Both the position numbers and the translations under genes were made by a program. The notes under the pieces are model-generated. The model worked only from the letters and a program-made list of their open reading frames with translations, was not told the origin of the DNA and ran no database searches. From Schmidtea nova (lineage: Eukaryota), in NCBI GenBank assembly GCA_044892505.1, contig CM097882.1, positions 172,670,001 through 172,734,000 of the forward strand: a DNA stretch of 64,000 nt, given 5' to 3'. This document shows, in pieces, positions 3,801 through 44,488 of the stretch (the stretch's first letter is position 1; each line of letters starts with the position of its first letter).

Positions 3801-6800
3801 GTGTAATTGGTACATGGAATACCTGAAAGACTAAAAACATGATAAATATTTTTATAATTAAAAATAATTACTCATTTTTGGAAAACCTAATAGTTTTTAG
3901 TGAAACACGTTTCGAAATTTTTTGAAAATTTAATATAACTTAAAATATAGTACTTACGATGTTATTTCATCAATTTCCTGAAAACTCTAAGATAATTTTT
4001 TTGAAACATTTAAAAAAAAATTATCAGCCACCTTAAAATTAATTTCAATAATTGAATAGATTAAAATTTTTGGGGTGTTTTGACCCACAGAAACGGTTAA
4101 GGTATTTGAAAGTTTATATCTTTTTACATATTTTATTTTTGTGTGCGCTTATTTTTCTCTACCTCTTTTTCTACTTTATAAATGCTTTTCCAAGTAAAAC
4201 CTCAATACTTAACTGACAGGAAGAGTTTCATTTTTCTTTACTAAATTCTTATTGATTTTTTTTAATATTATAATATTATAGTCATTGAATCATTGAATTA
4301 CACTGAATTACACTACTGAATTACACGGTGTTTGATAAAATGATACAATTTTGATAGAAAATATGCATTATAAGTGCTGGTGTCCAATAGACACCAACAA
4401 GGTTTTACAAAGTTTGACATTCAAAAAATGGATATGAAGATAAAAAGAATAATAGAATTTATTGACAAGCCATGCACATGGTATAAGCCTTTGGAATAGT
4501 AAACTAATTATATGGAAAAAAACATTTAATTAAGAAAAGTAAGCTAGAAATAAAAAAAAATATTTTGTTTAGGGTAAAATTATTCGTGGGTTTATGTTTT
4601 GCATTATGTTTTGCATTATGTTTTGCATTATGTTTTGCATTATGTTTGCATTATGTTTTGCATTAATTACTACAAAAATCTCAAATAAAATTTATTTCTA
4701 GTAAATTAAAACAACTGAAATCCATGACGTCTAGTCACTTTAACTTTGGGTCTAAATAACTCCAGAAATTTGAGAATTGTTAATTGTAAATTTATCATCG
4801 CAACAATCTTACAGAGCTATTCAATTTTCTAACTCACACAAAAGGAGAATAATACTTAGTGTCTTCTAAAATTACACCTATTTCAATCATCTTTTGGAAT
4901 TAACCTTCCACTCATTTCTGTATTGAAGTTGGAACTTGTCTATTCTTGGATCGGTTTGACATCTGGAATGAGTACCAATGACGCCGTTACATTGCGCATA
5001 CTGCCCAGCATAGTCGATGGAATACTCTCAATATATGCCTGGCAAATGTGTAATATTAAATAATCTCTTTTGTGCAATCTGAATGTTTTATTGGATTCCA
5101 ATACTGGGACTAACTGAACCTTTTTCATAGTTGAGCGATAAGGACAGTTCCCATAATCTTCAAAACTATATAAAAAACTTAACAACAATTAATCAGAAGT
5201 ATTGATGCAGTAATAGTAGGTAGATGTGTGGAGCCAGGAACAAAGACATTATGACTCATTGCGTGGGCGGAAAATAAGAACAAAGACCCCTCCCTCCCCC
5301 GGGGGTAGAATTTTTTTTTGATGAGTCATCGATGAGTCATCGATGAGTCATACTTTTTTTTTCAAATTTTTTTTTCGCGCCAAAATTTTTTTTCAAATTT
5401 TTTTTTCGCGCCAAAAATTTTTTTTCAATTTTTTTTTTCGCGCCAAAATTTTTTTTTCAAAATATTTTTTCGCGCCAAAAATTTTTTTAAAATTTTTTTT
5501 TCGCGTTAAAAATTTTTTTTCAAAAATTTTTCTTTTAACAAATTTTTTTAACAAATTTTTTTTTTTCAAAATTTTTTTTTAACAAATTTTTTTAACACAA
5601 ATTTTTTTAACACAAATTTTTTTAACACAAATTTTTTTAACACAAATTTTTTTAACACAAATTTTTTTAACACAAATTTTTTTAACACAAATTTTTTTAA
5701 CACAAATTTTTTTAACACAAATTTTTTTAACACAAATTTTTTTAACACAAATTTTTTTAACACAAATTTTTTTAACACAAATTTTTTTAACATAAATTTT
5801 TTTAACACAAATTTTTTTAACAGAAATTTTTTTAACAGAAATTTTTTTAACACAAATTTTATTTTTTATTTTTATGACTCATAGATGACTCATCGATGAC
5901 TCACCATTATGACTCATCGATGACTCATCCTTATGACTCATGGATAACTCATTTCAATTTATAAATAAGTCACGTCATCGGTAACTCATAACAAAGACAT
6001 TGCAATCCATGTGCAACATTAACAAAGACATTGCAATCCACATGCAATGTAAACAAAGACATTTCCTTGCCAAATTTCATAACAAAGACATTTCAATGCC
6101 AAAAAAACTAAACAAAGACATTTCATTGCCAAAATACTAAACAAAGACATTTCATTGCCAAAAAACTAAACAAAGACATTTCATTGCCAAATTTTATAAC
6201 AAAGACATTTCATTGCCGAATTTCATAACAAAGACATTTCATTGCCAAATTTCTTAACAAAGACATTTCATAACAAAGACAATTCATTGCCAAAAAAACT
6301 AAACAAAGACATTTCATTGCCAAATTTCATAACAAAGACAATTCATTGCCAAAAAACTAAACAAAGACATTTCCTTGCCAAATTTCATAACAAAGACAAT
6401 TCATTGCCAAAATACTAAACAAAGACATTTCATTGCCAAAAAACTAAACAAAGACAATTCATTGCCAAATTTCATAACAAAAACAATTCATTGCCAAAAA
6501 AACTAAACAAAGACATTTCATTGCCAAATTTCATAACAAAGACAATTCATTGCCAAAAAACTAAACAAAGACATTTCATTGCCAAATTTCATAACAAAGA
6601 CAATTCATTTCCAAAAAACTAAACAAAGACATTTCATTGCCAAATTTCATAACAAAGACAATTCATTGCCAAAATACTAAACAAAGACATTTCATTGCCA
6701 AATTCCTAAAATAACTAAACACAGGCACGAACAGAACATTTACTAGCAGAACCCTAGTAGCAGAACATCTTTTGTGATAGTTTTTATCTGCCAAAGCTTA

Positions 6801-9800
6801 TTACTCGAACATTAATTACAATTCAACTTCATTCAGCATCATTTGATAAAACAAAGACATATCATTGCCAAAACATCTTAACAAAGACATTACAGTACCC
6901 ATGCAGTGTAAGCAACATGCTAACAAAGACATTGCAATACAGATGCAAGTTAACAAAGACATTGCAATACAGATGCAAGTTAACAAAGACATTGCAATAC
7001 AGATCCAAGTTAACAAAGACATTGCAATACATATGCAAGTTAACAAAGACATACATGCAAGTTAATAAAAAATATTCAAAAATATTCAAAAATATTCAAG
7101 GGTTCAAAATTTTTTAAAACTATATAAATATCATGTGAAAGATATTTGAGATGTGTGTGTGTATGTTTTCAAACCTTCAAGATGTCAAAAAAAATAATTA
7201 AACTACCACAACGTAATATATTTTTATTTTCCTACCCATTTTGACGCTGCAATTCATGTGCAATATTAACAAAGACATTGCAAAACAGATGCAAGTTAAC
7301 AAAGACATTGCAGTTGCAAGCCAAGTTAACAAAGACAAGATGTCAAAAAAGACTAATTATTAATCACAAATGCATTCTCTTAACCAATGATAAAAATAAA
7401 TTAAATGAAAATACATATATTTTTGTACGACATTATATGTATATCACATGATATTCATCAATATTAATACCACAAGATTCACACTTATCAATATTTTTTA
7501 AACATTTTGAACAAATAATGACATGTCCACAAGGTAAATATAAAATGCCAACTCTATTGATATTACATATTGAACATGTGAGAAATCTTTGTTTGGTTTC
7601 TTCCAATTTCTTGGTTACATTTACCTCTAAAATATCCACATTCAGCATGAAAGTTCGAATAATAGTACGATATTTTCCAAGTCGAAATTCCATACATGAC
7701 CAGAAAATGGTATTCAAATTGAATTCAGTAGAATCGAGATCATTAAGAATCATAAAAAAACTGGATAATTTCATCATGGATTTATCATATCCGAATGATT
7801 CTGTTAAACCGATAATTAATTTATTATTGAAGGATTTGAATAATTTTGAAAGAATGTCGATATCGCATTTCTCAATCGATGTTAAAAGGTCATCAAGTAT
7901 TAAAAAGGATTGGATCCAATTGTCCAAAGTAATGAAATTATCTGTAACCTATTTTAAAATAATTAATTTAAATATATATTTTTAAAACTAACTTTATTTG
8001 TTTCTTTATTCATTTTCGTCAATCAATACTATTTACAAGTTGTATTTATATTGCAAAAATCAACCAATAATAATCTTTTTGAATGTATAGTAAAGATATT
8101 GAGTTTTTTTAGTTTTTTTAGTTTTGTTATATATATCATCCTAGTTAAAATTTTATTAGTATAGTTGTTATATTAAATAATAAACATGAAAAGTAAATAA
8201 CCTTTTTGAATGTATAGATACAATATATATTAAAGCTATTGATGATATATATAACTATTTTAAAAGATGAAGAGGTAAAATAATTAATGTCATTATTCAG
8301 ACCATATTTTTAATCTTGCGATGAAATTATTAAAAAGCTTGAATATATGTTATGATGGATATGTTTCTTAGGATATCTTGCTTGATACTTTGTTTTAATT
8401 GTTGAAGTTTTTTAAACATCTGACAAAATCCCCTAAATTATTATTTATATCTCAAATGAATTACTTATAAAATTGTAATAGATATATACCAGCTTTTATT
8501 ACGTTGTGGTACTTTATAAATATTTTACGTTGTGGTATTTTAAATTGTAAAATTTTATTTAGAACATGAATTTTGATAATCCGCTTTGTTTTTTACAAGA
8601 AATTAAAACTATGATGTACAGTTTGATATTATTTTAATTTATTTTCGTGCGTATTTCCAATAATTATTTTGTCACAGACTATATATTTCCAATAGTTATT
8701 TCACAATTTTGTTACAGACTATATATTTTCAATAACTATTTCAACATTTTATTTTGTCACAGACTATCATTTTATGATATTAATTTCATGCTAGCAGAAC
8801 ATTGCGAACAGAACATTTAGTAGCAGAACCTATTCTGTGATGGTTTTTATCTGCCAAAGCTTATTACTCGAACATTTATTGCAATTCATTCAGCATCATT
8901 TGTTATAATATTTTCACCAATTAATATTTTCTCTATTGGTTTCCTCATTTTAATGTAGAATTTACTCTAACAATTTATTGTCACTCGTATAATTTTCATT
9001 AAATTTATCCACTAGCCGAACATTTCGAACAGAACCTTTAGTAACAGAACATCTTTTGTGATGGTTTTTATGTGCAAAAGCTCATTATTCATACATATAC
9101 TAAAATAACAATCATTAGCATATGAGCTTCGATCAATGTAACAGACAAATTGTGAAAGTATATTACAATTACTGATACTCTTTTAATGACAATTATTATG
9201 TGAATATTTCTTGTTTGATGAATTGCTATGTATGTTTGATGAATTTCAATATATTTTTGATGAATTTCATAGTATTTGTGAGAATTTGTGGATATTTTCT
9301 TGTAATTACGCTATAGAATTATGATATTTCATATATTTAATGATACTTTGTGATGACATTTCATATATATTTGATATGTATTTCTGATGTATTTGTGATA
9401 TTTTGTGATAATATTTTGTGTATGTTTGTATTTTCTTCTTTTTTTGTGATAATTTGTACATGAATATCTATGTATTTTGTGATGAAATTTTATATGATAT
9501 ATTTTTAATATGTTATCAAATAATATTTGATGTATCTAATATCATTTTGTGAGTATTTTAATGTATTTGCACTATAGTATGACGATATTTCATGCATTCA
9601 ACCTCATTTTAAAGTAGAATTTACTGTAATGTTTGAAACATTTATTTCCATTCATATAACTTTCATTAATTTTATACTGTAGCATAACATGACTAGCAGA
9701 ACATTTAGTAGCAGAACCCTAGTATCAGAACATCTTTTGTGATGGTTTTTATGTGCAACAGCTCATTACTTGAACAATTATTACTGTTACATTAAGGTAT

Positions 9801-12800
9801 GTTGATATATGATAGTATATTTTGTATGTGTAATGAACTTTTGTATGTGATTATATCCTTTGTATATGATAATATTTCATATTTGTGATGATATAACATA
9901 TATTTTCAGATATTTTGTTATGTAATGACACTAGTATGTAGATATTTCTTTAATGATTATTGTTGTAAATTTGATGAATTTCTGTGTATTTTTGATGATT
10001 TTCTATGTACTTTGTGATGATATTTAATATGATCTTTTTTTTCTTTTTTTAATATTTGGTATAATTTTGATGATTTCTATATATTTTTTCTATGTTATCA
10101 AACTATAGTAAGATAATATTTGATTCATCTAAAGTCATGTATCTAAAGAGTATTTCATGTATTTGCACTATAGTATGATGACATTTCATGCATTCAACCT
10201 CATTTTAAAGTAGAATTTAGTGTAATGTTTGAAAGATTTATTTCCATTCATAATACATTGTTACATTTTCATCAAATTTATTCAGTAGCAGAAAATTGCT
10301 AGCAGAACATTGTGAGCAGAACCCTAGTAGCAGAACCTATTCTGTGATGGTTTTTATGTGCAAAAGCTCATTAGCTAAACATTTATTACTGTTAAATTAT
10401 AGTATGATGATATATGTAATTATATTTTGTAATTATATATTGTAATAAACTTTTGATATTTTGTATGTAACGAATTTCTATGTACATTTTATATTTTGTG
10501 TATGTATGATAATATTTCATATGTGTTGATATTTCTGATGATATTTCATATAATTTTGATATTTATGTATATTTATTATGTAATTGCACAAGTATGTAGA
10601 TATTTCTTTAATGAATATTGTTGTGAATTTGATTTAATATCTGTATATTTTTTTGATGATTATCTATTTAATTGTACTATAGTGTGATGATATTTAATGT
10701 ATGTAATGATACTTTGTAATGATATCCTTTGTATGACACATTTTATTTTGATATTATATATATATTTTACACTAGTATGATAATAATTCATGCATTTGAC
10801 TGACTATAACATGACAACTTTTCATGTGAATGATATCCTTTGTGTATGTATGATATTTCTTTTAATTATTAAGTGTATTTGGAATATATCATGATAATAT
10901 TTTGTCTGTATTTGCATTAAAGTATGATGATATTTCATGTTTGTAAAGATATTTTATGATGATATTTTATATATGTAATGATATCCTTTGTGTATAGGAT
11001 TTATTTCTATGTACTTTTGATATTTTGTATGGTAATATTTCATGCGTTATAACATTTTGTGTAATGATATTTCATGTATGTAATGATACTTGTATGCGTT
11101 TTAATAATTTTCTATGTATTTCAATGTATTTTTATGTTATCAAACAAAAATATGATAATCTTTTATATATTTTCTTTGTGATTCTTTGATATTTTATGGG
11201 CATATTTCATATATTTTGTGAGTATTTCTAATGTTTAGACACGATAATGTGATAATATTTTGTGCATATGTTTGTATTTTTCTTTGTGGTTTACATAAAA
11301 GTATAATAATATTTCATATATATGATAAACTTTTGTGCAATGTGATAATTTGGCACTGGTGATAATATTCTTTTTATGATTATTATTGTATGTATTTCTA
11401 GTGTGTAAAAATTTCCTATAATTTTGTGTGTATTTTGTGATGATATTTCATGTATCTTTGCTATTTTCTATGTAATTTACACTATAATAATAATATTTCA
11501 TGCATGTGATAATCTGTAATGTTATTTCTTATATATGATATTTTGTATGATGAATCTATATATCTGTGAAAGTTTCTGTATTTTGTGGATATTTCATGTA
11601 TTTCTATGTTATCAAACTATAGTAAGATGAAATTTTATGTATGTTTGTATTTCAGATATTTTGTATGTATATTTATTCACTATAGTATGGTGATATTTTG
11701 TACGTGTGTGATAAATTTTTATGTATTTTGTATGTATTTTTGATAATAGTTCATATATGTAATGTTTTTGTGTGTGACGAATTTCTATGTACTTTTCATA
11801 TTTTGTGTGTAATTTTGGTGATTTTTTATGTAATTGCAGTATGATGATATTTTGTATGTAATTTGCACAATAGTATAATGTTATTTCATGTATGTAATGA
11901 TACTTTGTGATAATATTTCAAGTATGTAATGTATATTTCATATATTTTTGATATATTTGTACTATAATTTAAGAAAAATTTGTATGATTATCTCAATAGT
12001 ATGATAATTTTTCATGTATTTGTCATAGTGACCGAACATTTAGTAGCAGAACATTGCGAACAGAACCCTAGTAGCAGAACCTATTCTGTGATGGTTTTTA
12101 TGTGCAAAAGCTCATTACTTGAACATATTTCTAATAATAAATATATTGTTACCTAATTTTCAATGTCCCTTATCATCATTTTAATGTAACAGTTTAGCAA
12201 AACTTTCAATCATTGGTTGGTTAATAAAATGGTTGGTTATTAAATTGGTTGATTTTTGCAATATAAATACAACTTGTAAATAGTATTGATTGACGAAAAT
12301 GAATAAAGAAACAAATAAAGTTAGTTTTAAAAATATATATTTAAATTAATTATTTTAAAATAGGTTACAGATAATTTCATTACTTTGGACAATTGGATCC
12401 AATCCTTTTTAATACTTGATGACCTTTTAACATCGATTGAGAAATGCGATATCGACATTCTTTCAAAATTATTCAAATCCTTCAATAATAAATTAATTAT
12501 CGGTTTAACAGAATCATTCGGATATGATAAATCCATGATGAAATTATCCAGTTTTTTTATGATTCTTAATGATCTCGATTCTACTGAATTCAATTTGAAT
12601 ACCATTTTCTGGTCATGTATGGAATTTCGACTTGGAAAATATCGTACTATTATTCGAACTTTCATGCTGAATGTGGATATTTTAGAGGTAAATGTAACCA
12701 AGAAATTGGAAGAAACCAAACAAAGATTTCTCACATGTTCAATATGTAATATCAATAGAGTTGGCATTTTATATTTACCTTGTGGACATGTCATTATTTG

Positions 12801-15800
12801 TTCAAAATGTTTAAAAAATATTGATAAGTGTGAATCTTGTGGTATTAATATTGATGAATATCATGTGATATACATATAATGTCGTACAAAAATATATGTA
12901 TTTTCATTTAATTTATTTTTATCATTGGTTAAGAGAATGCATTTGTGATTAATAATTAGTCTTTTTTGACATCTTGTCTTTGTTAACTTGGCTTGCAACT
13001 GCAATGTCTTTGTTAACTTGCATCTGTTTTGCAATGTCTTTGTTAATATTGCACATGAATTGCAGCGTCAAAATGGGTAGGAAAATAAAAATATATTACG
13101 TTGTGGTAGTTTAATTATTTTTTTTGACATCTTGAAGGTTTGAAAACATACACACACATCTCAAATATCTTTCACATGATATTTATATAGTTTTAAAAAA
13201 TTTTGAACCCTTGAATATTTTTGAATATTTTTTATTAACTTGCATGTATGTCTTTGTTAACTTGTATCCACATTGCAATGTCTTTGTTAACTTGCATATG
13301 TATTGCAATGTCGTTGTTAACTTTCATATGTATTGCAAGGTCTTTGTTAACTTGCATATGTATTGCAATGTCGTTGTTAACTTGCATATGTATTGCAAGG
13401 TCTTTGTTAACTTGCATATGTATTGCAATGTCTTTGTTAACTTGCATATGTATTGCAATGTCTTTGTTAACTTGCATATGTATTGCAATGTCTTTGTTAA
13501 CTTAGATCTGTATTGCAATGTCTTTGTTAACTTGCATCTGTATTGCAATGTCTTTGTTAGCATGTTGCTTACACTGCATGGGTACTGTAATGTCTTTGTT
13601 AAGATGTTTTGGCAATGATATGTCTTTGTTTTATCAAATGATGCTGAATGAAGTTGAATTGTAATTAATGTTCGAGTAATAAGCTTTGGCAGATAAAAAC
13701 TATCACAAAAGATGTTCTGCTACTAGGGTTCTGCTAGTAAATGTTCTGTTCGTGCCTGTGTTTAGTTATTTTAGGAATTTGGCAATGAAATGTCTTTGTT
13801 TAGTATTTTGGCAATGAATTGTCTTTGTTATGAAATTTGGCAATGAAATGTCTTTGTTTAGTTTTTTGGAAATGAATTGTCTTTGTTATGAAATTTGGCA
13901 ATGAAATGTCTTTGTTTAGTTTTTTGGCAATGAATTGTCTTTGTTATGAAATTTGGCAATGAAATGTCTTTGTTTAGTTTTTTTGGCAATGAATTGTTTT
14001 TGTTATGAAATTTGGCAATGAATTGTCTTTGTTTAGTTTTTTGGCAATGAAATGTCTTTGTTTAGTATTTTGGCAATGAATTGTCTTTGTTATGAAATTT
14101 GGCAAGGAAATGTCTTTGTTTAGTTTTTTTGGCAATGAATTGTCTTTGTTATGAAATTTGGCAATGAAATGTCTTTGTTTAGTTTTTTTGGCAATGAATT
14201 GTCTTTGTTATGAAATTTGGCAATGAAATGTCTTTGTTAAGAAATTTGGCAATGAAATGTCTTTGTTATAAAATTTGGCAATGAAATGTCTTTGTTATAA
14301 AATTTGGCAATGAAATGTCTTTGTTTAGTTTTTTGGCAATGAAATGTCTTTGTTTAGTTTTTTTGGCATTGAAATGTCTTTGTTATGAAATTTGGCAAGG
14401 AAATGTCTTTGTTTAGTTTTTTGGCATTGAAATGTCTCTGTTATGAAATTTGGCAAGTAAATGTCTTCGTTTAGTTTTTGGCAATGAAATGTCTTTGTTA
14501 TAAAATTTGGCAATGAAATGTCTTTGTTATAAAATTTGGCAATGAAATGTCTTTGTTTAGTTTTTTGGCAATGAAATGTCTTTGTTTAGTTTTTTTGGCA
14601 TTGAAATGTCTTTGTTATGAAATTTGGCAAGGAAATGTCTTTGTTTAGTTTTTTGGCATTGAAATGTCTCTGTTATGAAATTTGGCAAGGAAATGTCTTT
14701 GTTTACGTTGCATGTGGATTGCAATGTCTTTGTTAATGTTGCACATGGATTGCAATGTCTTTGTTATGAGTTACCGATGACGTGACTTATTTATAAATTG
14801 AAATGAGTTATCCATGAGTCATAAGGATGAGTCATCGATGAGTCATAATGGTGAGTCATCGATGAGTCATCTCTGAGTCATAAAAATAAAAAATAAAAAT
14901 TTGTGTTAAAAAAATTTGTGTTAAAAAAATTTGTGTTAAAAAAAATTGGTTAAAAAATTTATGTTAAAAAAAAAATTTTGAAAAAATTTTTTTGGCGCGA
15001 AAAAAAAATATAAAAAAATTTTTGGCGCGAAAAAAAAATTTGAAAAAAAATTTTTGGCGCGAAAAAAAATTTGAAAAAAATTTTTGGCGCGAAAAAAAAT
15101 TTGAAAAAAAAGTATGACTCATCGATGACTCATCAAAAAATTTTTTTTTACCCCCCCGGGGGGTCTTTGTTCTTTTTTTCCGCCCACGCAATGAGTCATA
15201 ATGTCTTTGTTCCCGGCTCCACACATCTACCTACTAGTAATGTCGAATGAGACATATAAGAATAATCTTTTTGATATTGACGATGAAATGATCAATTTCT
15301 GCAAAGACCAACTGCTGCAGTTCCAACCAAGTGATGATTATCAGGAAGGTTTGTAGTTGACAATCTTATTCATAGAAGATATTTCTTCAGAGCAGTTGCT
15401 GAACTTCACCGTGCGAAATAGATGTAAAAGATTACATAGTCCTTGAAGATCTGAATGTTTAGACAACAATTAAACAAAGAAGAAGAGAAGGGCGTTTGGA
15501 ACATTTGAAAATTTGTTGTGCAGATTTATGTAAATGCTTGGTTCACATCTCTCTTAGCCTTTTCCGCCCCTCGAATTCATCTCTACCTTGTTAAAGATAT
15601 TAATAAGTATAAACAAGAAAATGTAATTATTTCGAATGTTGCTCTAAAGAAGTTTCTTTCTATCTCGATCTTTATATTTGAAAATTACCAGAGTTAACCT
15701 AACTTTTCTTGGAGGTAGTGTCCCCTAAACATTGATGAAATAAAGTGAAATTTTCACAGGTTATTTTTTTCGACTAAAAACAGAATGATAACGTCCCAAG

Positions 15801-16348: not shown

Positions 16349-19300
16349 GCCACTGTCAAGGAATTATTGCACCTTATTGATGTAATGTTTAAAGAAGGAG
16401 TGTAAAAGATACGTTATATATTTACCATACATGGTATATTAAAAGAAAAAACTTTTATCATGTATATAATACTTAATAAATTCAAATAAGACTATTTTTG
16501 ACGGGCTTGCTTTATGATTATTATTAAGACGTATGTTCATAAAAATATTAATTCTTTTATTATGAACATCCAAAAACAAATTTGTAAAATTTTAAAATAA
16601 TGTAGATATATGATCTTTACTTAGAATTTACCTTCTTGAGCTACATGTTGATCTCCAAATAAAAACATAAAGTCAGAATTTTCAGTTGCAAGTTTATTGT
16701 ACATAACTTTCAAATCCTCTCGAAGTTCTCTCTCTCCGTATCCTTTACTTAATGAAATTTCAAAGAAGCTTAAATCAGCCGCAAAAGCGGCAAGACGCGA
16801 TAAACTCCGCTTTCCTGACCCACTAACCGCAACGAGCAAAGCATGACCTCCATCCATTCTGAGGATTCTGTGAATACTATTCAGATGTTCCAGTGCATCA
16901 TCAAATAATACTAAATCTAATATTCCTTGGTCTAATTCGTTATAACTTTCAATTAACTGAAATTACGTTTTAGATATCTTATAGTAAGTCAACATTATTA
17001 ACCTCTTGAAAAAATGCTTTAATAACTGCATAATCCTGTAAATCCTCATAAAGTCTTGGTTCATCTTCTAATGATGCTGTCCAATAATCACCATATAAAA
17101 TTGGATTAGTTTGAACATATGACAAGTTTTTCGGGAATTCATCGTTTATGATGTTTAGTAATATTCCCTAAAATAAAATATAAAAAATAAAAAAACACAA
17201 AAACATTCTGCTAAAAGCAAATAATTAAGTTATCATTATAATAATAATTGTTTAAATATGTATATTTAGTCTTTAATAGTAAAAGAAATCATTCTAGAAT
17301 TTAAGATTAGTTAAGAATATTTCCAATAAAGAAATCAAAATCTATCAATAAATAACAGAAGAAGTTGAAGTAACTTAACCCTTTAAGAGCGGAATTAAAT
17401 TTCATAAAAAGTCAGGAAATATGTCAATTATCCGTCAAAAATAAAATTAAAGATATAATTGTGATTTTCAATAGCTATTCTATTCAATAGTATTCAGATG
17501 TATCCGCACCTCGCACTTGAGAGCTGTGGACGGTGATTCGGATTTATCCGTATCTCGCATCTAAAGGGTTAAAGTAATTCATCAATTAAACAGTAAAAAT
17601 AATAATAGCGGCAGTCATTTATTTATTGCTATGAAATGGTATTTGATTCATAGCATTTCCAAGGAATAAAGAAATTAATTCGAATCGGTTAACTAATTCT
17701 CAGATGAATTATTTTCCATTGAAATTAATAGTATTAGCATAACCTGTCCCGTATGATAAGCTGACAACACGTCAAAATTTGGCCTAATATAGGCTAAACA
17801 CATTTGAAAAAGCCAATGCAGAGAATTTGTGTTGGATATGAAAAAAAACATTGCAAAAAAATAATTTAGCCCCAATTGATTTTACAATTATTCAGTGGTA
17901 TTGTAATGTCTTTTATAAATATGTTTTTTTTGAAAATTAGATTACAGGAAAACTACGTGGTGCGCCCAATAAGTCGTGAGACTAATATAGAAATAATAAT
18001 AGTAAAATAATTGATACAGACATATTTAAACTTCAACATATATAGTTAAAGAAAATGTATTTTGTTTTAATAATCCATTATTGTTTAAGTATATTTTTGC
18101 GAACATTCGAAAAATGCCTCTGGAAAGTATTCAATACCGTAGCGTTATTCGCTTTCTCTTTCTGAAAGGAAAAAATAGAGAAGAGGTTCTTTCTGAACTG
18201 AAAGCTGTTTAGCAACAAGAGTGCCCATCCACAGCAACAATTTATCGTTGGTTCAATTACTTTCAGAGTGGTAGAACCTCCGTGGTGGACGAAGAAATAT
18301 CTGGAAGACCCTCAGAAATTGATGAAAAAATAACGCAAAAGCTGCAGACAATCGTGCAAAACGAAAGAAAAATAACGACGAGAGAGCTCACAACCCGTCT
18401 AAGTGTGAGCAAAGGCACTGTGCATACTCTCCTCACTCTAAGTGGTATTCGAAAACTATGTTCCCGTTTTGTGCCACGCTTCTTAATGGTGTAAATGCGA
18501 CAACGACGCTTGGAATGCTGCTTGGAGAATCTGCAGATCAGGACCAATGTTGGAGACCGTTTCATTGATAATATCATCACTGTGGACGAGACACCGTTGT
18601 CCCTTTATGTCCCCGAATCTAAAAGAGAGTCTCAAGAATGGAAACTGCCAGGAGAAAGCAGCTCACTGAAAATGCGGTCCTCAACTTGCCACCAAAAGGC
18701 TCTCATGCTGACGGTGTTTTGGGACGCCAATAGCATTATTCTGAATGACTTTACTGAATCCGGCGTGAAGATCAATAGTTCTTTCTACTCCAACATCGTG
18801 CAGCAAGCAAGGAAGGCACGACGCAAGAGCAGAGTGTGTGATCTCTATCTTTTACACGACAATGCTCCCATCCACACCAGCAGCGTTTCCATGGCCAAAA
18901 TTGAGCGTTGCGGGCTCAATTTGCTTCCTCTATTTACCATACTTGTTCTAAATACAAAGTTTTGTGTTGATATCTTAAGTCTTTCTATTTTAGTCTCACG
19001 ACTTATTGGGCGCACCACGTATATGATATATTTATACTAAGATAGGATAAATATTTAGTGTCTGACCCCATGTGTTTTCTATTCATAAAATTAAAGCTCA
19101 ACAATAGTAAAACTTTATTTACAAAACAAAATTTTGATCAAATAAATTTCACAAAGATTCATAGAATTAATTTTTTTAAAGATTTACTACTAGGTAAATC
19201 ATTTTATTAAATGTTACTGTTAGTTTGATCCGTTTAGTAACTGAAATATTTGGTTTTCTTTACATAGAAGGGCAAAAGCATAGTCGCTTTTATATGCTTG

Positions 19301-19514: not shown

Positions 19515-20274
19515 ATTATTATCAATAATTCTCATAATGACTATAGATCAAAAATTTTTTTTTTATAAACAATAACACAATATTTCGGCACAGCCTTTAT
19601 CAAGTGTGTATTTCTATCGTTATATTTACTTAATCCTAAATAGTAGCCTTAATTATTTTTTTAATATTTTATAATGATTTTATTTGATGAAAAAATTTAT
19701 TTTAATTTTTTTGTGCGAATTGAATGTTGATGGATGGTTTGTATTTTTTTATGTAAAAAGTCTCGGAAGCTAATTTTTGTAATGAATTTTTGAATCCCTC
19801 TTGTAGAATCTGGCATTTTGTTTCTTCTATAGATGGAGTTGTTTTATGTACTTTCTCCCAGTGTTCGTAATAATTACTGGTTTTGATTTTAGTGTGTTCA
19901 TTAAGTCGGGTGCGAAAAGTTCTATGTGTTTCTCCTATGTAAGTAGCGTCACATTTTTGGCAAGAAAGTTTATATACTATATTTTTGGAAAAGCAAAAGC
20001 ATCGGGTTGTGGAACGGCAAAGACATTTATGTTTGGAGATGTTGGAAATTGGTGGCTTTCGGAGTTGTGATTTTAACGGTGCGGAGGTTATGAACGTTGG
20101 ACGGATGTGGATAGGCAAATCTGTTTGATTAAAAATGTTGGTGATTTTGATTTATAAAATATTAAAAAAATAATTAAGGCTACTATTTAGGATTAAGTAA
20201 ATATAACGATAGAAATACACACTTGATAAAGGCTGTGCCGAAATATTGTGTTATTGTTTATAAAAAAAAAATTA

Positions 20275-20334
<60 letters not shown>

Positions 20335-23300
20335 CTTAAAAATGATTGCTGATTTCAACTCACTCCTTCAAAATATAATTTAATATTAATATTTGAAATT
20401 TAATCTTCATCTTATTTGCACATCACTAATAACATTTTAGAGAAGTGTTGCCACCTTTGGAAAATTGTTGACCCGGACATTTCAGTAAAAAGATTTTTTT
20501 TGAACTCGAGAAAAAGAAAATCATTGGAACATGAAAATGAGTTTTTATTATTAAAATTAAATAACATACAAAAATAGATTGCTTCTTAAAAAACAGGAAA
20601 ATGTTTTGTAAAGACAATGTAAATTTTATTTTTAAAACTGTATTTTATATTGCTCCTTTCTGCTTATAAAAAATTTTTATTTTCCTGTTGTTGTCGCATT
20701 TTATTTTTAAATTGTTAAAAAATAATAATTCGGCTTAAACTTGATTAAGCGTTAAACGGCTCCTTTTATCCCACCACAATGAACCCATTACTGAAAAAAT
20801 TCGTTCGACTAAGGAATTACTGGCGGAAATGCTGAATAAAAATTCCATTAACTTCCTCACTACAGGATATTCTCCTTCCCTCATTGCTTTTTCATTCTTT
20901 TCGTTTTCCGTGATATATTTAGCTAATATATCATTTTAATGAGCATAGCTCGTGAAATAAATCGTCACATTATGATTCAATGTCCACGTTTAGATATGCA
21001 CTTATTGCAATACACAATACTATTAATACAGTGCCGAAATATTGTGTACTTTTTTTTAATAAATTTTGATCTATAGTCATCCATTATNNNNNNNNNNNNN
21101 NNNNNNNNNNNNNNNNNNNNNNNNNNNNNNNNNNNNNNNNNNNNNNNNNNNNNNNNNNNNNNNNNNNNNNNNNNNNNNNNNNNNNNNNNNNNNNNNNNNN
21201 NNNNNNNNNNNNNNNNNNNNNNNNNNNNNNNNNNNNNNNNNNNNNNNNNNNNNNNNNNNNNNNNNNNNNNNNNNNGAAGTCACAAGTATAAATAGATTTG
21301 CAGTTGGCCTGAATTCACTTGAATTCAAGTTAATTTTTTATTTAAAATACAAAATATGTTTTAAAATTAAGATCTCCGATCTTACATTGGCGTTCGCGAG
21401 CCGCATTTTGTTAACCCCTGTTTTTGAAGTTAAACTACAATGTTATATCTGTAGATGAATTAACCAATTTAAATAAGTTAATTACCACAATTCAGAAATA
21501 AGAATACTAAATCAGTAAATTACACAATTCGGAAATAATAATACTAAATAAGTAAATTACACAATTCAAAATTATATTTTATACAAATAATATTCAAACA
21601 AATTTATAATTCATAATATTAAACGAATTTTAATATTATTAATTCACATATAACATTCCTCCGTCTTATTCGGCTCTCAACTCGAAATCGTCGTATAATC
21701 GCGGCTTCACATTTCTATTGTGTCTTTTCGGGTATCTTCCTGTGGTCTCTTTATTCTCTCCCGTCGACGTTGCTTCGTTGACCTCTTCCAATCTCTCCGA
21801 TTCTTTTGTTCTTGACCATATACTTGTTCCCCAACTGTCCGTCTCTATCTTTGCTATTTCTGATCTTACTGGTATAATCTTAATCTGGTTATAATTACGA
21901 TGTATTATCTTCCCATCCTCCTCTCTTCTTAATTTAAAAGTCAAATCATTTACTTTCTCCAGTATTTCATATGGGCCGCAGTATTTCTCCCCAAATTCTT
22001 GTTTCTGCACTTCTTTTACTAATGTCGAATCTCCTATTTTGACGTCTGTATTCCATCTATTTCGATTGTAGATCTTTTCGTTATATACTCTTGCTTTATC
22101 AGTTCTCTTTTTTACTTCCTCTTCTATGTTCGTTCCCTCTGTTCTCAGTTTCCTCATGAATTCTCCGTAGTCTTGTGGTCCTATTATGTCGCTTGTTTCT
22201 TCTCTTACTTTTGGTGTTCTGCCGAACATTAATTCTATCGGTTTATATCCAGTACTTTTATGGACTGTGTTCCTTACTCCATATTCTACCACGTGTACTG
22301 TTGAATCCCATTCCTTCGTCTTTCTGTCGAACATGGTCGCTGCCATCATACTTTTTGCTGTTTGGAACATTCTTTCGATTAAGCCGTCAGATTGTGGGTC
22401 GTACGGTGAAGTACAGGTTTTCTTTGTTCCTATCAGACTGCACAACCCTTTAAACATATTTGACTCAAAATTCTTTCCCTGATCTGAGTGAATCCTTTCT
22501 GGTATACCGAATTTTGTGATCCATTCTTCCCAAATTGCTCTAGCCACTGTTTCTGTCGTAATTTCTGGGAGTGCTATTAGACATGGGTATTTTGTGAAGT
22601 AGTCAATTAATCCCAGAATGTATCTATTTCCTTTTCTTGTCATTGGAAAAGGTCCCGTAATGTCTATTCCCAAAAATTCTAAAGGTCTACTGCTTATAAA
22701 ACTCTGTAGTGGTGCTCTTACTCTTCCGTTTATATACTTGTTGTGTTGACAGGCTATACATCGGTTTACTCTATCTAAAAAGGTTCTCGTTGATATTTGG
22801 CCAATAGTATCTTTCTTTGGCTGCTCTCGTGGTTCTTTCAATGCCGACATGTCTCAATTCTCGATGTAATTCGTCAATATATCTATTTCTTTCTTCTTCT
22901 GGTATTATTTTCCTATGTCCTTCTGCTTTCTTAATCATAAGATCTCCTTCGCTGACATACATAAGCTACGCTTTTTTCCATAGTTCTAAGTGTTTCCGGT
23001 TTTGTTCTTTTCTCCCTTGCTGTATCCAATCGATTATTTGTCTAACTTCTGAATCCGTCTTCGTATTTATTTGACATATAATTCTTTCTGACTTGTTCTC
23101 TTCTGTATAATTGTTTTCTTCCTCGTAAACTTTTACATTTCGTTTCTTTCTTGAGTCCGCGTGTTTCAGTCGGCATTGTTCGCATGGAGTAATTCTTGAC
23201 AATGCGTCCGCATTGCAATGGTCTTTCCTTTTTCTAAATTCCACTTTCATGTCATATATTTCTAGTTCTGCTTTCCATACACAATATTGAGAGGTGTTTG

Positions 23301-26300
23301 GACTACTCCAATCTAATAACCATTTAAGTGCCTGATGATCTGTTTTTATTGTGAACTTTTTACCTACTAAATAATACTTGTATTTTAATACAAATGTGTA
23401 AATTGCCAAAAGTTCCTTGCGTGTGATACAATATTTCCTCTGCGTTTTCGTCATAGTTTTCAACCCATACGCAATAACTCTCTCCTTTCCATCTTGGATT
23501 TGAGATAGGACGGCCCCTATTGAATCGTTAGACGCGTCTGTGTCTAAAACGTAGTATCCATCTGTAGTTGGTAATGCTAATATTGGCGGTGATAGTAAAT
23601 CATGTCTTAATCTCTCGAACGATCCTTTTCTTTCCTCCGTCCATCTAAATTTGTTTTCTGTTCGAAGCATTTCGTTTAAAGGTTCTGTCGTCTTAGCGTA
23701 GCTTTTAATGAAGTTTCTGTAATATTCCGTCATCCCTAGAAATGTCCTTAGCTCTTTCTGACACATTGGCTTCTCATATTCTCTTATCACTTTGGTTTTG
23801 TCTGGGTCCGTCTGTACTCCTTCGTTTCTAATGTGTCCCAAATATCTTACCTCGTTTTTTAGAAAGTGGCATTTCTCCGGTGACAATTTTAGTCCCGCTT
23901 CTCTCATCTTCTGTAGTACTCTACTTAATCTTTCGCTGTGTTCTTCAATTGTTTTCCCGAATACCAGAATATCGTCCAAATATATCACACAGTTAGTCCA
24001 GTTCTCTCCTCTTAAGACTACGTTCATTATTCTTTGAAATGTTGCTGGTGCGGCACATAATCCTAATAGCATTCTTGTGAACTCGTATTGGCCGAATCTC
24101 GTACTAAATGATGTCTTCCTTATATCCTCTTCTGCGATTGGAATTTGATAGTATCCACTGGACATATCTAATGTGGAAAAGAATTTTGCGTTTCCGATCC
24201 TATCAAAGACTTCGTTTGCTGATGGTATTGGAAATATTGCTCTTTCTGTTTTTACATTTAAAGCTCTGTAGTCGATACACATTCTCATGTCCCCATTCTT
24301 TTTTTTAGTTACAACAATGGGAAAGTTCCATGGTGAATTGCTTTCTCTAATAATTCCCGCTTCTTCCAATTCTGTGATGTATCTTCTCACATCTTCCTCC
24401 AATATCCTTTGTATCCTTCTATGTTTGAATGCTATCGGTGTTGTTTTCCCCGTTTCTATACTGTGTTGTCCCACATTTGTCTTCCCAATATCCATTTTGT
24501 AACTATTGAATACATCTTTGTTCCGCCATAAATTTTGTGTTATCTTCTGTTTTTCTATTATTGTTTATATATCGTCTAGGTTGTTTACCAACCCTTTCAC
24601 AATTCTGTCTATACTTCTCTTTTCTTTGTTTTGGTCGATTGTTGACAATTTCATCAACGTGTTAATTTTTTCTCCTTGTCCTTCCATTCTTCCGCTTCTC
24701 CCAGTGTTGTTCCTGTATGTAGACTTTTCACTCCTCCTTCCTGCATATTAATTCGAACCCAAATCAATCCCTCGGAACATTTTGCTAGTCCATCGGCTAC
24801 CAGTATACCTCTTTCCTCCATCTTGCTCTTGTTTCCTGTAAATAAACAATTAGTTACGTCTTCCTTTATCTTCTCGTTCTCCTTATCTACTATCATCCCT
24901 TTGATCCAATACTCTCCCTCTCTTTTCAATGTCAGATTTTCTGCTACCACTACTTTTCTCGTTTCTTCTTCCGTCCCTTTAACTAGTCCTCCCACTCCTG
25001 GACGCCTGGGAGTGGTCTTTAACAGTTTAAAGACGATGGTATTGATGTCTTGGATAGAAATTGAATTTGAATACCCTTTACCTCGATACAGTCTTCTGCC
25101 GGTTTCATTATTACTCCCAGTTCTTTCATGCATCTGAGTCCGATATACGCATGTGGGAATACCCCATTCATTATTTCGAATTTGTGTTTGGTCGTCCTTG
25201 GACCCAAACTCAGTGATAATACTAATTGTCCTCGGCTTTTTCCTTTACTTCCATCTGCGTACGCTACTCTAACGTTTGAATCCCTGACTTCTATTGTCGA
25301 ATCTCGTTGTATTATTTTCTCTGCCAGTTCCTCGCTAATGACATTCAGATCTGCTCCCGTATCGAATAGTACTTTAACTTCTTCTCCTTGGATTTTGCAA
25401 CAAATGATTGGCTTGTTGGTTGCCCTTTCCGATCGTCTTTGTGATATTACTATTGTGGCTTTTTTATATTTTTTAATTTGGTTTGTCGCCATTACCTCCG
25501 ATAAACTGTGCCCACTTCTTTTCCATTGTTAGCTTACTTTTCTTTGTCTTCTTTTCTTTTTGTGTAATCATTTTTATAATTCATTCTGATTGGTCGTCTT
25601 CTTCGTATTCGCTATCTGAACTTGTCCTTTGTACGGATACTTCTTCTAATTGTCGTACTCTTCTATACTCGTCCCTCTTATTTGGGCATTCTCTACTTAT
25701 ATGTCCCTCTTTTTTACAATTAAAACATGTTACCTTTTCTCGATACTCTCGGCAATTGCTCGATATATGTCCTGTTTTCTTGCATAGGAAACATCTTTCG
25801 TTCTTCTTTTCTTCGCAAAAACGTGCAATATGACCGGTTTTGCCGCAATTGTAATATTACATTTGTTGTCCATTGTGGAATTCTTTTCTACTTCTATCTT
25901 GGTTATTCAGTTCTTTTAAATTTTTTATAATTTCCTGAAGTCTCTTAATCTCTTCTCTTAATTCTTGTAACTCCAATGTGGCATTTTATCTACCCACATT
26001 TGTCTAGCGTTGTTGTTTCCTTTCGCTTGAATAATTCCTTTCCCGTCTCTCCATGCACTATAGCTCTCTTCTCGTAGTTGTGATAATCCATATTCTGGAA
26101 TTATTTCTTTCTGGTCCTATTCTTCCTTTATTAGTTCGACAGCTTCTTCTATGGTTTTGGGCCGCAATATTTTCACTGTATTTCTCATGATTTCACTTTT
26201 TAAACCTTCTTTAAAGATTATTAATTCTATTCTGTTTCGATCTTCTTTTGTGTCTTTCGTCGTTCTTTTTACCCGTCTACTGAAATTTACTATCGTCTCT

Positions 26301-29300: not shown

Positions 29301-32300
29301 TTTATCGTAATGTTTGTCATTTTATCGATAGATTTTTTTATTTGTGGTGAAAATTGAAATGTATGACCGCTTAAAATTGAACCAAATATTTTTATCATTG
29401 ATTCCATTGTTAAATTTGGACAATATACTACCGAAAATAATGAAAGAAATCTTGGATCAACTGTATTCCTGCCACCTCCTGGTAATCCCATTGCGGCAAC
29501 ATAAGATAAATCTTTCATCCTTTTCCATGTAAGTTCTTTGCCTCTATCGTACATTCCTTTTTTTTCGACTAAAAGTTTCAGCATGGCAATTGGTTGTTGG
29601 GTGCCATATTTATCAATCTTAATTGAGTTATTTTAATTAATAGAGTAAATAACAACTTGAAATAATTAAAATCAATGTCCAAAATGTTTCATGAAGCTTC
29701 TTAATACTTCATAAATTTTCATTTATTTTATTATGTCAAGGTTAAAATTTTTATTTCAGATCTAACTTAGAGATCTAAAATAAAAATTATTTGACACTAA
29801 CTCTAATAATCTTTATATAAAAAATAAATGGAAAGTTCTGAAATAGAAAAGAAAAGATCAAATGTAAACAAAATAAAAGATGTAAATGATTCTAGAAATT
29901 AATATTTCTTTAGTAACACATTTTGTTGAAAAGATCAAAATTAAATTAATGTAACAATTAAATTATTTATTCAAAAAAGTAAAAATACTTAATTTATATC
30001 ATATATTTTTATTTCTGTAAATTTTTAACAACTTTTACAACATTCATGTTTATAAAGAATTAACTAGATTATTTTTCAAAATTCGAGACATCTTAATTAA
30101 TAAATTTGTAATTTGAAATGGCATTTGATTTTATTTATATATGTATATATATATATATACCCCGGCCTACCAAAAGTCTCCAGTCAGGCAATTATTTATA
30201 TATTGCAGTTTATAATATATTGCAGTGCAAATATGAACAGTAATGGAACAAAGGTCACCAAAACCTTCAACATGCTGCATGAGCACATGTACACACGTAC
30301 GCACTCACACACAGACGACACATACAGAATATGGCTACTCACACCAGACACAACAGTGATAACAGTTAGTCATGTTAATGAAGGATTGTCATTTTCTTAG
30401 AATATGGCTACTCGGAGAGAGCTTACAGACTTTCAGAAAAAAATTATTTACGGATGTTACCTGTGTGGAAAAGGTCAGAGTGAAACTGCTGCATTGACTG
30501 GCCATCCCAAAAGAACTATTAACTACTTCATGATTAAGTATCACCAGGAGTAAGTATCGCCCTAAACTTCTGAGCATTCGTACACAACGGCAGCTGAAAC
30601 GACTTGTGATGGCTCATCGTCGGTTCCCCTTGTCCAAGTTAGTGTCCATATTTAACACTGGCCATGTGCATGCCAGCATGTCCACCATTCATCGCGCATT
30701 AAATTCTCATGGTTTCTGTGGCAGATACTGTGCAAGGAAGCTTTTGATTGCATAAACAATTCGTCGTCGTTGCTTAAAGTGGTGCCGGGAGAGAAGGAGT
30801 TAGACAACAGAACAATGGCGCTCAGTCATTTGGAGTGATGAATCATGTTTCACTCTTTTCAAATCTGATGGACAACAATTCTGCTGGCGTCGTGTAGGAG
30901 AATGATTTCATCTTGACTGCATTCAGCCAATTGTAAAATATGGAGGAGGCTCCATCATGTTTTATAGTCTTTGCTCAGCCCGTGGAACTGGCCCTCTAGT
31001 GAAGTGCTGCAATCACATGACGTCAGTGGAATACTGTGCCATTCTGGAGAATGAGCTTGTTCTTTTTCTTCCAGAAATTGAGGGGCTCATTTTCAAACAG
31101 GATAATGAACCAATCGATATTTCGCAAATTATGAAGGAATTCTTTCTGCAACACAGCATCAACGTTTTGGATTGGGTTCCACAAAGCCCTAATCTGAATC
31201 CTATTGAGTTTCAATGGGACGTCATTAGTAGGCGAGTTCGCAAAAGGATTCCCATTTCCCGTAACGCCTCTGACCTGGAAACGCATCTGTATGAGGAATG
31301 GTCACACATCTCCCCTGATTTCCTGGCAAAAGTGGTCGATACAATGCCTAAAAGAGTGCGCCTTGTTATCCAGATGAAATGTAATATAACGAAGTACTAA
31401 CTCTCTCAGCACTACAGACATTCAGTATTCGTGTGTGTTTGTGACATTTGTTCACATTGCTGTACATTATAATTTGTTCATTATAAACTGCAATATGTAA
31501 ATAACTAACTGACTGGAGACNNNNNNNNNNNNNNNNNNNNNNNNNNNNNNNNNNNNNNNNNNNNNNNNNNNNNNNNNNNNNNNNNNNNNNNNNNNNNNNN
31601 NNNNNNNNNNNNNNNNNNNNNNNNNNNNNNNNNNNNNNNNNNNNNNNNNNNNNNNNNNNNNNNNNNNNNNNNNNNNNNNNNNNNNNNNNNNNNNNNNNNN
31701 NNNNNNNNNNNNNNNNNNNNNNNNNNNNNNNNNNNNNNNNNNNNNNNNNNNNNNNNNNNNNNNNNNNNNNNNNNNNNNNNNNNNNNNNNNNNNNNNNNNN
31801 NNNNNNNNNNNNNNNNNNNNNNNNNNNNNNNNNNNNNNNNNNNNNNNNNNNNNNNNNNNNNNNNNNNNNNNNNNNNNNNNNNNNNNNNNNNNNNNNNNNN
31901 NNNNNNNNNNNNNNNNNNNNNNNNNNNNNNNNNNNNNNNNNNNNNNNNNNNNNNNNNNNNNNNNNNNNNNNNNNNTGTTAAGTTAAAGAGTAATTAGTTA
32001 TTTACCAATATTCTAATTTAAAATATTTTAATGAATGTTAATGCTAAGTTTTATTTGTTATTAATAATATTATTAAAAGTAGTCATAATCCAATTAATTA
32101 AAAATTCAATAAATAAAGTAAAAATGAATGATAATAGTATAATAATTAAAATTAGTTATTATATAAAACGATTGGTTCAAAATTTATTAAGTAAAAATAA
32201 TTATTTACATAACAAAAATATTGAATAATATTGTAAATATTCAATTTAAATAATCAAATAACTTCAAAAATAAAATTAGTAATTAATTGAATAAAGATAA

Positions 32301-42791: not shown

Positions 42792-44488
42792 GATTTCACT
42801 AGAATTATATTAGTTTATTATTAGTATAAGTATTATTATTTTTATGGGATAGCCCGGGTACTTATCGAACGCTCAACGTAAATTTTAAAACTGGATATAT
42901 ATTTCATTATCAAAAGTTTTATACGAATATGTTAACCTTTAGCTACTGAATGACTATCATCTTCTTCCATGTTTGGAAGTCCGCATATTTGTTTTAAAAT
43001 ATCATTGAATTTTTCTCTATCTTCAGACACAATTGATGCACCAAAAGACCAAATAATCGAATTGAGAAATAAAGCCTCTAAGAATTCAAGATCACCTGAT
43101 GATTCGTTGCTATCATCATAATCTCGGCTGTAATTTGAAGTCAATAAATCTTCTTGTGGTACAGGAAGTTGAGATGCAAAAATATTACAAAATTGTTTGA
43201 TAAGGCTCATTGGATTTTGAACAATTACCGTTTTTAATCTTTTACCTTGTTGCGAGCGAAATATTCCCTCGAAGATCAGATCTATTAATGGTGGGATGTA
43301 TTTCTCATATAATCTTTTCAATATTTCATGATCTGATTCCGGTTGGTGAAAAAATAGCTAAAATATTATTTATTTTAATTTTGCTTAAAAAAATTTTCTA
43401 ATTTTTTTACAAAAGTTTTTTTAATGAGCATACCCATTTGGCCCAATAAGGCTTATATCCAAGATTTTTTGGATCCACATATACCATTCCACATCGAGAG
43501 ACAGTGGCTGGGGAGGCATATTGCAAATCACCGACTTCAAATAGCAATGAACAATGCGGTTGTAAACGTATTCGTTCCCCATTAACAAGGGTCAATAAAC
43601 GGTTGTCATCCATCACCGAATTCATATTTTCAATCCATAGAGCGTCAACATCTCCATCAAATAATAAAAAGCGCCTTTCCTCTTTATCAGTCTGTTGATT
43701 AATTTGACGAAATATTGAAGACAGTAATCCATCCGTCCAATCTCTACTTGCTGGATCCAATGTTCCGTATAATTCATTTACTGTACGCTCCTTGGGATTA
43801 ATAGTGTACATTTTAGTTTGGATTTTTAACCTGGAAATATAATCAATTTATATTATAAAATGTTTTATAAAAATTAAACAAATTGGTTTAGCGTAGATTC
43901 TAAATACCACGGACATCGTGGTTAAAATTTGCTAATAAAATTTGAGCAATTAATTTAATTTTAATTTATGTTAAAATAAAGACTTACAATTGTTAAATTT
44001 TCATTTATTAGTGTTTGTTGGTAATTGTTTATATATATATGTTACGGTAAATGTACAAAATGTCAAAATGTACACATTCGCCGGTAAATGTACACATAGA
44101 CCACACCAATGGGTAAATGTAAGTTTACTATTTCGAAAAAGTTTGTTATACATACATTTACAGGTAAATGTATACATTATATCAAGGTCTTGTAAAATGT
44201 AGAAATAATTGACAAATATGTATATGTACCGGGAAAAGTACATATCGGCTTCGGGGCATTTATATCAAATCAAATTTTACTTAAAAAATATATTATTGTT
44301 TTTTCGAACATATAGATGGAGTTAATTTCAGGACATTTAATTTTTTTTATGTTTTGTATTTGAAAAATATTGAATTTGTTTTTATTTCGAAAAAAATGTA
44401 ATAAAAATGTACATTTGCCAAATCTTGCAGTTAATGTATACATTTACCGGTAAATATATACATTTACCTGGTTATGTACATTTACCGT

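Follow-up and report, generated by a model that had tools for sequence, protein, structure and literature searches.

A stretch of 64,000 nucleotides of Schmidtea nova (assembly GCA_044892505.1, contig CM097882.1, positions 172,670,001 to 172,734,000 of the forward strand), hereafter the window, was analysed and contains a young, non-autonomous mobile element, known from a single copy and inserted in an intron of a dynein heavy-chain gene with a target duplication of 6 bp. The element spans positions 5215–15235 (10,021 bp), is bounded by long inverted arms and carries, within each arm, one intact copy of a gene for a predicted E3 ubiquitin ligase with a RING domain. As to its origin, a reduced derivative of a Polinton/Maverick-like element, which would have kept its ends and one end-proximal gene, rebuilt its second end and been served in trans by an rve integrase, is a plausible reading to which slightly less than an even chance is given.

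The inverted homology stops at the identical base on both sides, and a 6-base direct repeat stands immediately outside. Direct reading of both junctions confirmed the ends AGTAGG...CCTACT and the duplicated flank AGTAAT (left copy 5209–5214, right copy 15236–15241) that a preliminary description of this DNA had reported. The terminal 21-mer AGTAGGTAGATGTGTGGAGCC was found exactly twice in the 64-kb window, at 5215 (+) and 15235 (-), with a chance expectation of none, and no copy exists there besides the two ends. The duplication is perfect and the insertion therefore young; at the base composition of the window, a direct match of 6 bases at that place has a chance of 6.6e-4. Flank bases 7–9 mismatch, so that the match is limited to 6 bases and duplications of 7 to 9 bp are excluded. 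No N run occurs in or beside the element, and its flanks are unique within the window, with no paralogous empty site.

One further base (T/A) pairs outside each end, by which the termini may also be read as TAGTAGG...CCTACTA. Because of this extra pair, TAG...CTA ends with a 4-bp GTAA duplication give the same empty site, and the caveat of the preliminary description on this second parse was correct. A TA duplication, as in a Tc1/mariner parse, was rejected, since the empty site would need an improbable perfect AGTAAT tandem.

The left arm (5215–8068, +) was measured at 2,854 bp and the right arm (12244–15235, -) at 2,992 bp, matching the 2.85 and 2.99 kb given before; the right arm is composed of the left-arm modules with different array copy numbers. 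The left arm opens with a terminal non-array segment of about 105 nt (5215–5319, +), which includes the end AGTAGG, a composite site and a C/G-rich palindrome. In the composite site, AACAAAGACATT and ATGACTCAT are adjacent at 5240–5260, 25 nt from the end, and the C/G-rich palindrome comes next. At either terminus these two short motifs are neighbours, 25 nt from the end, and the arms are mostly tandem arrays built on them.

The outer arrays of the left arm (5320–5952, +), delimited by TRF and by repeat families D3 and D5, comprise 11-bp GATGAGTCATC units, 31/32-bp T-rich CGCGCC units, 15-bp units (about 23 copies) and 11/24-bp ATGACTCAT units. The inner arrays (5989–7337, +) comprise 29/58-bp and 30-bp units, each of which starts with the AACAAGAC-type motif AACAAAGACA, and a spacer unit of about 130 nt (6728–6860) was recognised by repeat analysis. 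Copy numbers by TRF differ between the left and right arms, with about 23 versus 6 copies of the 15-mer, about 22 versus 32 of the 29-mer and 4.4 versus 10.4 of the 30-mer. The left arm has 36 copies of the motif AACAAAGAC and the right arm 46; the centre has none, and the remaining 54 kb have a single one. The orientation of the motif is constant within each arm and opposite between arms, that is, the same relative to the end. Similarly, TGA[CG]TCA is present at 10 and 9 sites in the arms, at 0 in the centre and at 6 in the remaining window. The core AP-1 consensus heptamer is tgactca (PMC3083148), and one of the two arrayed terminal sites contains an AP-1-type heptamer.

The unique centre (8069–12243; 4,175 bp, 23% G+C) consists of degenerate AT-rich repeats. 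It includes five copies in the same orientation (8791–12175) of a unit of 95–130 nt (families D9 and D11), of which one copy is also present in each arm (6728–6860 in the left arm) and which carries three GCAGAAC motifs at a spacing of 14 nt; the centre may derive from degenerate copies of this arm module. The centre holds no ORF (open reading frame) longer than 63 aa and no tRNA; it matched no Rfam family and, beyond noise, no Pfam family. The motifs of the element are absent from the flanks, and the block is foreign to the surrounding intron.

Searches for relatives of the ends were extended to metagenomic data. In IMG/VR neither the terminal 18-mer nor the composite terminal motif and the 29-mer array unit had any match. 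In the JGI metagenomes the terminal 18-mer gave seven matches, all attributable to chance, with similarity ending after 18–20 nt; the best of them (contig L005) falls within a retrotransposon-like ORF.

The identity between the arms, counted over the alignable non-array segments, increases inwards. The terminal segment 5215–5353 differs from its mirror by 5 substitutions and 3 gaps over 119 aligned bases, and segment 5861–6050 by 2 substitutions over 190 aligned bases. Segment 6700–6925 shows 0 differences over 226 aligned bases, and segment 7053–8068 shows 0 substitutions and 2 micro-repeat indels over 1,004 aligned bases. This gradient suggests that the arms were either built in two steps, the inverted repeat having been lengthened inwards later on, or homogenised by conversion of their inner part.

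The palindromic shape and the near-identical inner arms are also what a chimeric fold-back read, yielding a false second arm, would leave in an assembly. Such an artefact is extremely improbable here. The arms are unequal in length by 138 bp, four of their arrays have different copy numbers, and seven substitutions and several indels distinguish them; the differences in array copy number and in the outer substitutions disfavour a simple fold-back; a 4.2-kb asymmetric centre separates the arms, both outer junctions enter unique intron DNA with a matching duplication, and no N run accompanies the block.

A palindromic duplication formed in place, by fold-back during replication or repair around a resident RING gene, would be non-mobile, and the AGTAAT repeat would then be microhomology or chance. 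The distribution of substitutions (0 inner against 7 outer) could reflect recent or ongoing conversion between arms, as in genomic palindromes, and only a single copy is known. This origin was nevertheless judged improbable: the homology breaks off at corresponding bases on the left and on the right, directly before the 6-base direct repeat, with the low chance value given above; the ends bear a terminal segment of their own, free of arrays and with the composite motif; the motifs of the element are confined to a block foreign to the intron; and the gene family is otherwise known from mobile or virus-like contexts.

One real gene lies inside each arm and points outward, as had been described; the RING ORF is the only one, and its two copies are on opposite strands. 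A zf-C3HC4_3 RING domain (Pfam, E 1.9e-9) was detected at the C-terminus of the ORF at 7433–7927 (-) and 12385–12879 (+). An in-frame stop directly upstream closes this ORF, which belongs to exon 2 of a splice model formed by a 21-nt exon 1, a 44-nt GT..AG intron and exon 2, with a product of 178 residues. The left copy (7433–8013, -) is arranged as exon 1 at 7993–8013, intron at 7949–7992 and exon 2 at 7433–7948 including the stop, and the right copy (12299–12879, +) as exon 1 at 12299–12319, intron at 12320–12363 and exon 2 at 12364–12879. The splice model is supported by the residues flanking the junction, which are common with the closest relative, protein P0001. A TATA-like box is located about 30 nt upstream of the ATG, within the arm, whose edge is 55 nt upstream of the ATG; beyond the arm edges at 8068 and 12244 the two copies have different upstream sequences. 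Both copies are intact, free of stops, frameshifts and other breaks, and no substitution distinguishes the right from the left gene over the aligned inner arm.

Protein searches were run with exon 2. The structure model, based on an alignment of 19 family members, had a mean pLDDT of 93.6 and showed six helices followed by the RING, in which all eight zinc ligands are kept across the family. By sequence the RING is closest to those of cIAP2, cIAP1 and XIAP (E 7e-15 to 1e-11), and the same three proteins were closest by fold (TM-score 0.83–0.87, root-mean-square deviation 1.0–1.5). The best matches in the viral structure library were IAP/RING proteins of baculoviruses, iridoviruses, entomopoxviruses and giant viruses, in the RING only; the six-helix N-terminal domain had no match in the PDB or in that library. 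Cellular IAP proteins (cIAP1/2 and XIAP) share with the element protein a C-terminal RING of the zf-C3HC4_3 type. They are defined, however, by at least one BIR domain, and in the element protein the Pfam scan gave RING families only and no BIR domain, the six-helix domain standing in its place. The product is a predicted E3 ubiquitin ligase with a family-specific six-helix domain and an IAP-type dimeric RING. Viral IAP-like RING proteins are thought to act on host proteins of cell death and innate signalling. By analogy we infer that the element protein would act on host proteins of these pathways, to the benefit of the element.

No ORF for a polymerase, integrase, ATPase, capsid protein or transposase was found in the element, and among its ORFs of at least 50 aa none besides the RING ORF matched a Pfam family. 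A tblastn search with the proteins of a Polinton-like contig described below hit only the RING gene, with no core-gene remnants in the centre. The absence of these genes, already noted in the preliminary description, was confirmed by both the Pfam scan and the tblastn search; Rfam families and tRNAs were likewise absent from the element. Autonomous Polintons/Mavericks are defined by genes for a protein-primed family B polymerase and for an rve integrase (PMC5499653), neither of which is present here, and the element is classifiable only as a possible Polinton derivative, not as a Polinton proper.

The reduced Polinton/Maverick derivative would have arisen from an ancestor that lost its polymerase, integrase, packaging and capsid genes and retained the cis-acting ends and one accessory gene. 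The second end was probably restored when the surviving one was copied inward beyond the RING gene, which would explain why each arm has the gene. A retrovirus-type (rve) integrase from an autonomous relative in the same genome would have inserted the element, which would account for the 6-bp duplication and the AG...CT ends. In the arms, the arrays multiply the two terminal sites, which are candidate binding sites for an end-recognising protein encoded by the element or by the host; the arrays may also be regulatory DNA for the outward-pointing RING gene.

The characteristic Polinton duplication is 6 bp (PMC10045372). Vertebrate Mavericks likewise have 6-bp duplications, together with end motifs (AGT)2//(ACT)2 or (AG)3//(CT)3, inverted repeats of 46–1,447 bp and regions of accessory genes that separate these repeats from the core modules (PMC8097293). 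The present element resembles them in its 6-bp duplication, AG...CT ends, terminal inverted repeats and a gene adjoining the repeats. Compared with (AGT)2//(ACT)2, its ends AGTAGG...CCTACT agree at five of six bases at each end, in a single copy; such agreement of a random hexamer with (AGT)2 has a rough chance of 0.005 by our own estimate. The element differs in lacking polymerase, integrase, ATPase, protease and capsid genes, in the intron of its cargo and in its size of 10 kb, as against 12.7–24.6 kb in Mavericks (PMC8097293). In Repbase, non-autonomous elements are filed by equal duplication length and by alignment of terminal positions 1–11 to those of an autonomous family, with one mismatch allowed (PMC4455052).

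Shortened relatives of Polintons are known from protists. The endogenous mavirus-like elements (EMALEs) of Cafeteria are 5.5–21.5 kb long, with inverted repeats of 0.2–2.3 kb, and truncated EMALEs retain inverted ends "which must have regenerated" (PMC8547959). They are similar to what is proposed for the element in being shortened Polinton-related derivatives, down to 5.5 kb, with inverted ends. They differ in their protist hosts, in duplications of mostly 3–5 bp and in the retention of viral genes by truncated copies; a payload consisting only of an E3 ligase has been described for none of them. Transpovirons are linear derivatives of Polinton-like viruses of about 7 kb that have lost the morphogenesis module, depend on a helper and have inverted ends (PMC5499653), but they keep a helicase/inactivated-polymerase gene, which the element lacks, and are tied to amoebal giant viruses.

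The RING family is small. Protein P0001 is 49% identical to the element protein and about a dozen others are 25–45% identical, all of them from metagenome assemblies; outside the family only RING-domain matches to IAPs, mostly of molluscs, were obtained, and the protein had no match in IMG/VR. Proteins P0146 and P0155, from 26-kb contigs, are related through the RING only. P0001 has no contig on record to show its context, and the short contigs L001, L003 and L004 were uninformative in this respect. In the longer contigs the family appears to inhabit mobile or virus-like DNA of three kinds.

Protein P0153 aligns with the element protein over both domains (BLASTP E 5e-14; profile E 2e-36). Its gene, in contigs L012 and L013, is located 30 bp upstream of a gene for a Pox_A32-type ATPase (28.5 bits; Pfam cutoff 22.8), which is followed by an rve integrase (E 2.6e-15, with a weak chromodomain match) and, beyond the integrase, by a 412-aa ORF with a weak double-jelly-roll match, all on one strand. 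The 361-aa and 412-aa ORFs of L012 had no match in the PDB by sequence. As read from these sequence matches, the gene set is Polinton- or mavirus-like, and the contigs are called Polinton-like and not proven Polintons because their 8.2 kb include no protein-primed polymerase. L012 1295–7187 and L013 1–5898 are 99.1% identical over 5.9 kb and come from two different, unrelated metagenomes (JGI 3300027940 and ENA ERZ27235085), which points to recent activity of the element or to a widely distributed host.

The second context is that of protein P0050, in contig L014 (1–7898; 7.9 kb, 23.5% G+C). This contig has inverted arms at 481–1563 and 6791–7872, which are 94.6% identical and pass, on their outer sides, into low-complexity arrays that reach both contig ends. 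The RING gene begins 76 bp inside the inner edge of the left arm, the right half includes two MATH/TRAF-type genes, and neither a transposase nor Polinton genes were found in the contig, which may represent a second such element. That a RING gene is paired here with TRAF-like MATH genes suggests, in line with the role proposed above for the element protein, that cell-death or innate-immune signalling is manipulated.

In the third context, the genes for P0009 and P0152, in contigs L002 (8360–10504) and L015 (157–5213), are downstream of an RNase_T (DEDDh exonuclease) gene and share their strand with a very long gene call of retroelement-like character, within which a Monjiviricetes_fusion match falls. 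In L015, arrays of 21-, 33- and 152-bp units are present downstream of the RING gene. The RING gene is thus not specific to Polintons, as relatives occur both in these retroelement-like contigs and in the other long-inverted-repeat contig.

The origin from a Polinton, as proposed in the preliminary description, was upheld in part. A bounded non-autonomous element with a 6-bp duplication and AG...CT ends was recovered, a RING relative adjoins an A32-type ATPase and an rve integrase, and truncated relatives with regenerated ends are known. Neutral or adverse to this lineage are the occurrence of the gene in retroelement-like and other palindromic contigs, its intron and the overlong, array-built arms. 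Several results weigh against this origin. The junctions fit a 4-bp duplication with TAG...CTA ends equally well, and no second copy or partner sharing the ends was found in the window, IMG/VR or the JGI metagenomes. The arms of 2.85–2.99 kb exceed the repeats of Mavericks (46–1,447 bp) and of EMALEs (0.2–2.3 kb) and, like those of foldback transposons, consist of tandem arrays. A spliceosomal intron interrupts the RING gene; the ORFs of intact vertebrate Mavericks are intronless (PMC8097293). In 8.2 kb of L012/L013 neither a protein-primed polymerase nor an inverted end is present, and RING relatives are also found in a retroelement-like (L002/L015) and in a long-inverted-repeat (L014) setting. 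Finally, with 7 substitutions in 309 outer bases and 0 in 1,230 inner bases (Fisher p 1.2e-5), the graded identity of the arms mismatches the prediction of a single copying event followed by uniform decay.

Some of these results are those expected of a foldback-type cut-and-paste transposon of another superfamily, with a 4- or 6-bp duplication, for example an AcademX-like element with TAG ends, that captured a RING gene from the host or from another mobile element. The subterminal arrays would then be transposase binding sites, with a DDE transposase supplied from elsewhere. We regard this origin as possible, if somewhat doubtful. Tandem arrays predominate in the arms, and their motif, which recurs within the terminal 60 nt, keeps a constant orientation to the end; long arms of tandem units are a hallmark of foldback-like transposons (PMC3573991, PMC3169594). 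Galileo and Tm1 are similarly built: the very long repetitive arms of Galileo and Tm1/FB consist of short tandem units, many copies are transposase-free, and Tm1 carries a gene, as does the present element. The cargo, with an intron and its own TATA-like box, is similar to a cellular gene, and L014 provides a second long-inverted-repeat contig with a RING relative and without Polinton genes. The junctions permit a 4-bp duplication, and AcademX makes duplications of 3–4 bp (PMC10045372).

On the other hand, the window yielded no transposase with a relation to the element, and the named families do not fit. Galileo (P superfamily) and Tm1/FB (Mutator superfamily) make duplications of 7 bp and 9 bp, respectively, and have other end motifs; both were rejected, as the flanks of the element match over 6 bases only. 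Ginger1 and Ginger2 were rejected because they require TGTNR termini and a 4-bp duplication (PMC2836005), in place of which the element has AGTAGG or TAGTAGG. IS3EU/GingerRoot was rejected because it needs TA..TA ends with 6 bp (PMC10045372), and the element has TA ends only with 4 bp. For AcademX, the 4-bp GTAA parse is possible at the element, and no Academ-type gene is present nearby.

Returning to the reduced Polinton/Maverick derivative, a wider and rather unlikely extension of it is that the element and L014 are perhaps members of an undescribed class of small palindromic "cargo satellites" of Polinton-like viruses in the genomes of invertebrates or micro-eukaryotes. Such satellites would have lost their replication and capsid genes, and their rebuilt ends, of several kilobases, would be full of sites for end recognition or for host transcription factors. 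They would have kept one or a few host-manipulating genes, namely the IAP-type RING E3 and, in L014, also TRAF-like MATH proteins, and the RING family would be an E3 borne by mobile elements and moving between element classes.

Non-autonomous inverted-repeat elements, foldback elements and truncated relatives of Polintons are already known. What is new is that one element unites array-built arms of 2.9 kb with ends and a duplication of the Maverick kind and has an E3 ligase as its only cargo; new, too, are the RING family itself and its spread over three classes of mobile DNA. If the link to Polintons is true, Polintons/Mavericks of the animal type spawn minimal, helper-dependent derivatives composed of ends and a host-manipulating ubiquitin ligase, a reduction of which most documented cases have so far come from protist virophage relatives and transpovirons. 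Whether or not the link holds, a small, previously unnamed family is defined by the six-helix domain and the IAP-type RING. In addition, the arms illustrate how a recognition site at a terminus may expand into tandem arrays of several kilobases, by which satellite DNA and dense clusters of AP-1-type sites within a host gene can arise.

The surroundings of the element were also annotated. ORFs on the minus strand correspond to dynein heavy-chain exons for AAA_6 (54091–54432), AAA_5 (43407–43811), the lid (42932–43321) and AAA_8 (490–861). These exon domains stand in gene order, and the whole 64-kb window is therefore inside one dynein heavy-chain gene, whose introns, including the one in which the element is inserted, are very large and filled with transposons. 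A Gypsy-type long terminal repeat retrotransposon at 21666–25492 (-) has its protease, reverse transcriptase-RNase H and integrase in three separate ORFs, and its pol is thus interrupted at least twice. The best match of its reverse transcriptase is 63% identical, matches with a name are to arthropods at about 45%, and an exact look-up of the ORF gave no hit. A Penelope-like element (reverse transcriptase and GIY-YIG) was located at 46654–47823 (-), with a second GIY-YIG fragment at 19702–20118 (-). Three mariner-type transposase fragments (Transposase_1 / DDE_3) were located at 18495–19040, 30957–31400 and 36893–37399 (+). None of the Gypsy, Penelope-like and mariner pieces of the window is related to the element. 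A 284-aa ORF at 37976–38830 (-) showed a weak, sub-threshold match to a proteasome subunit over about 45 residues.

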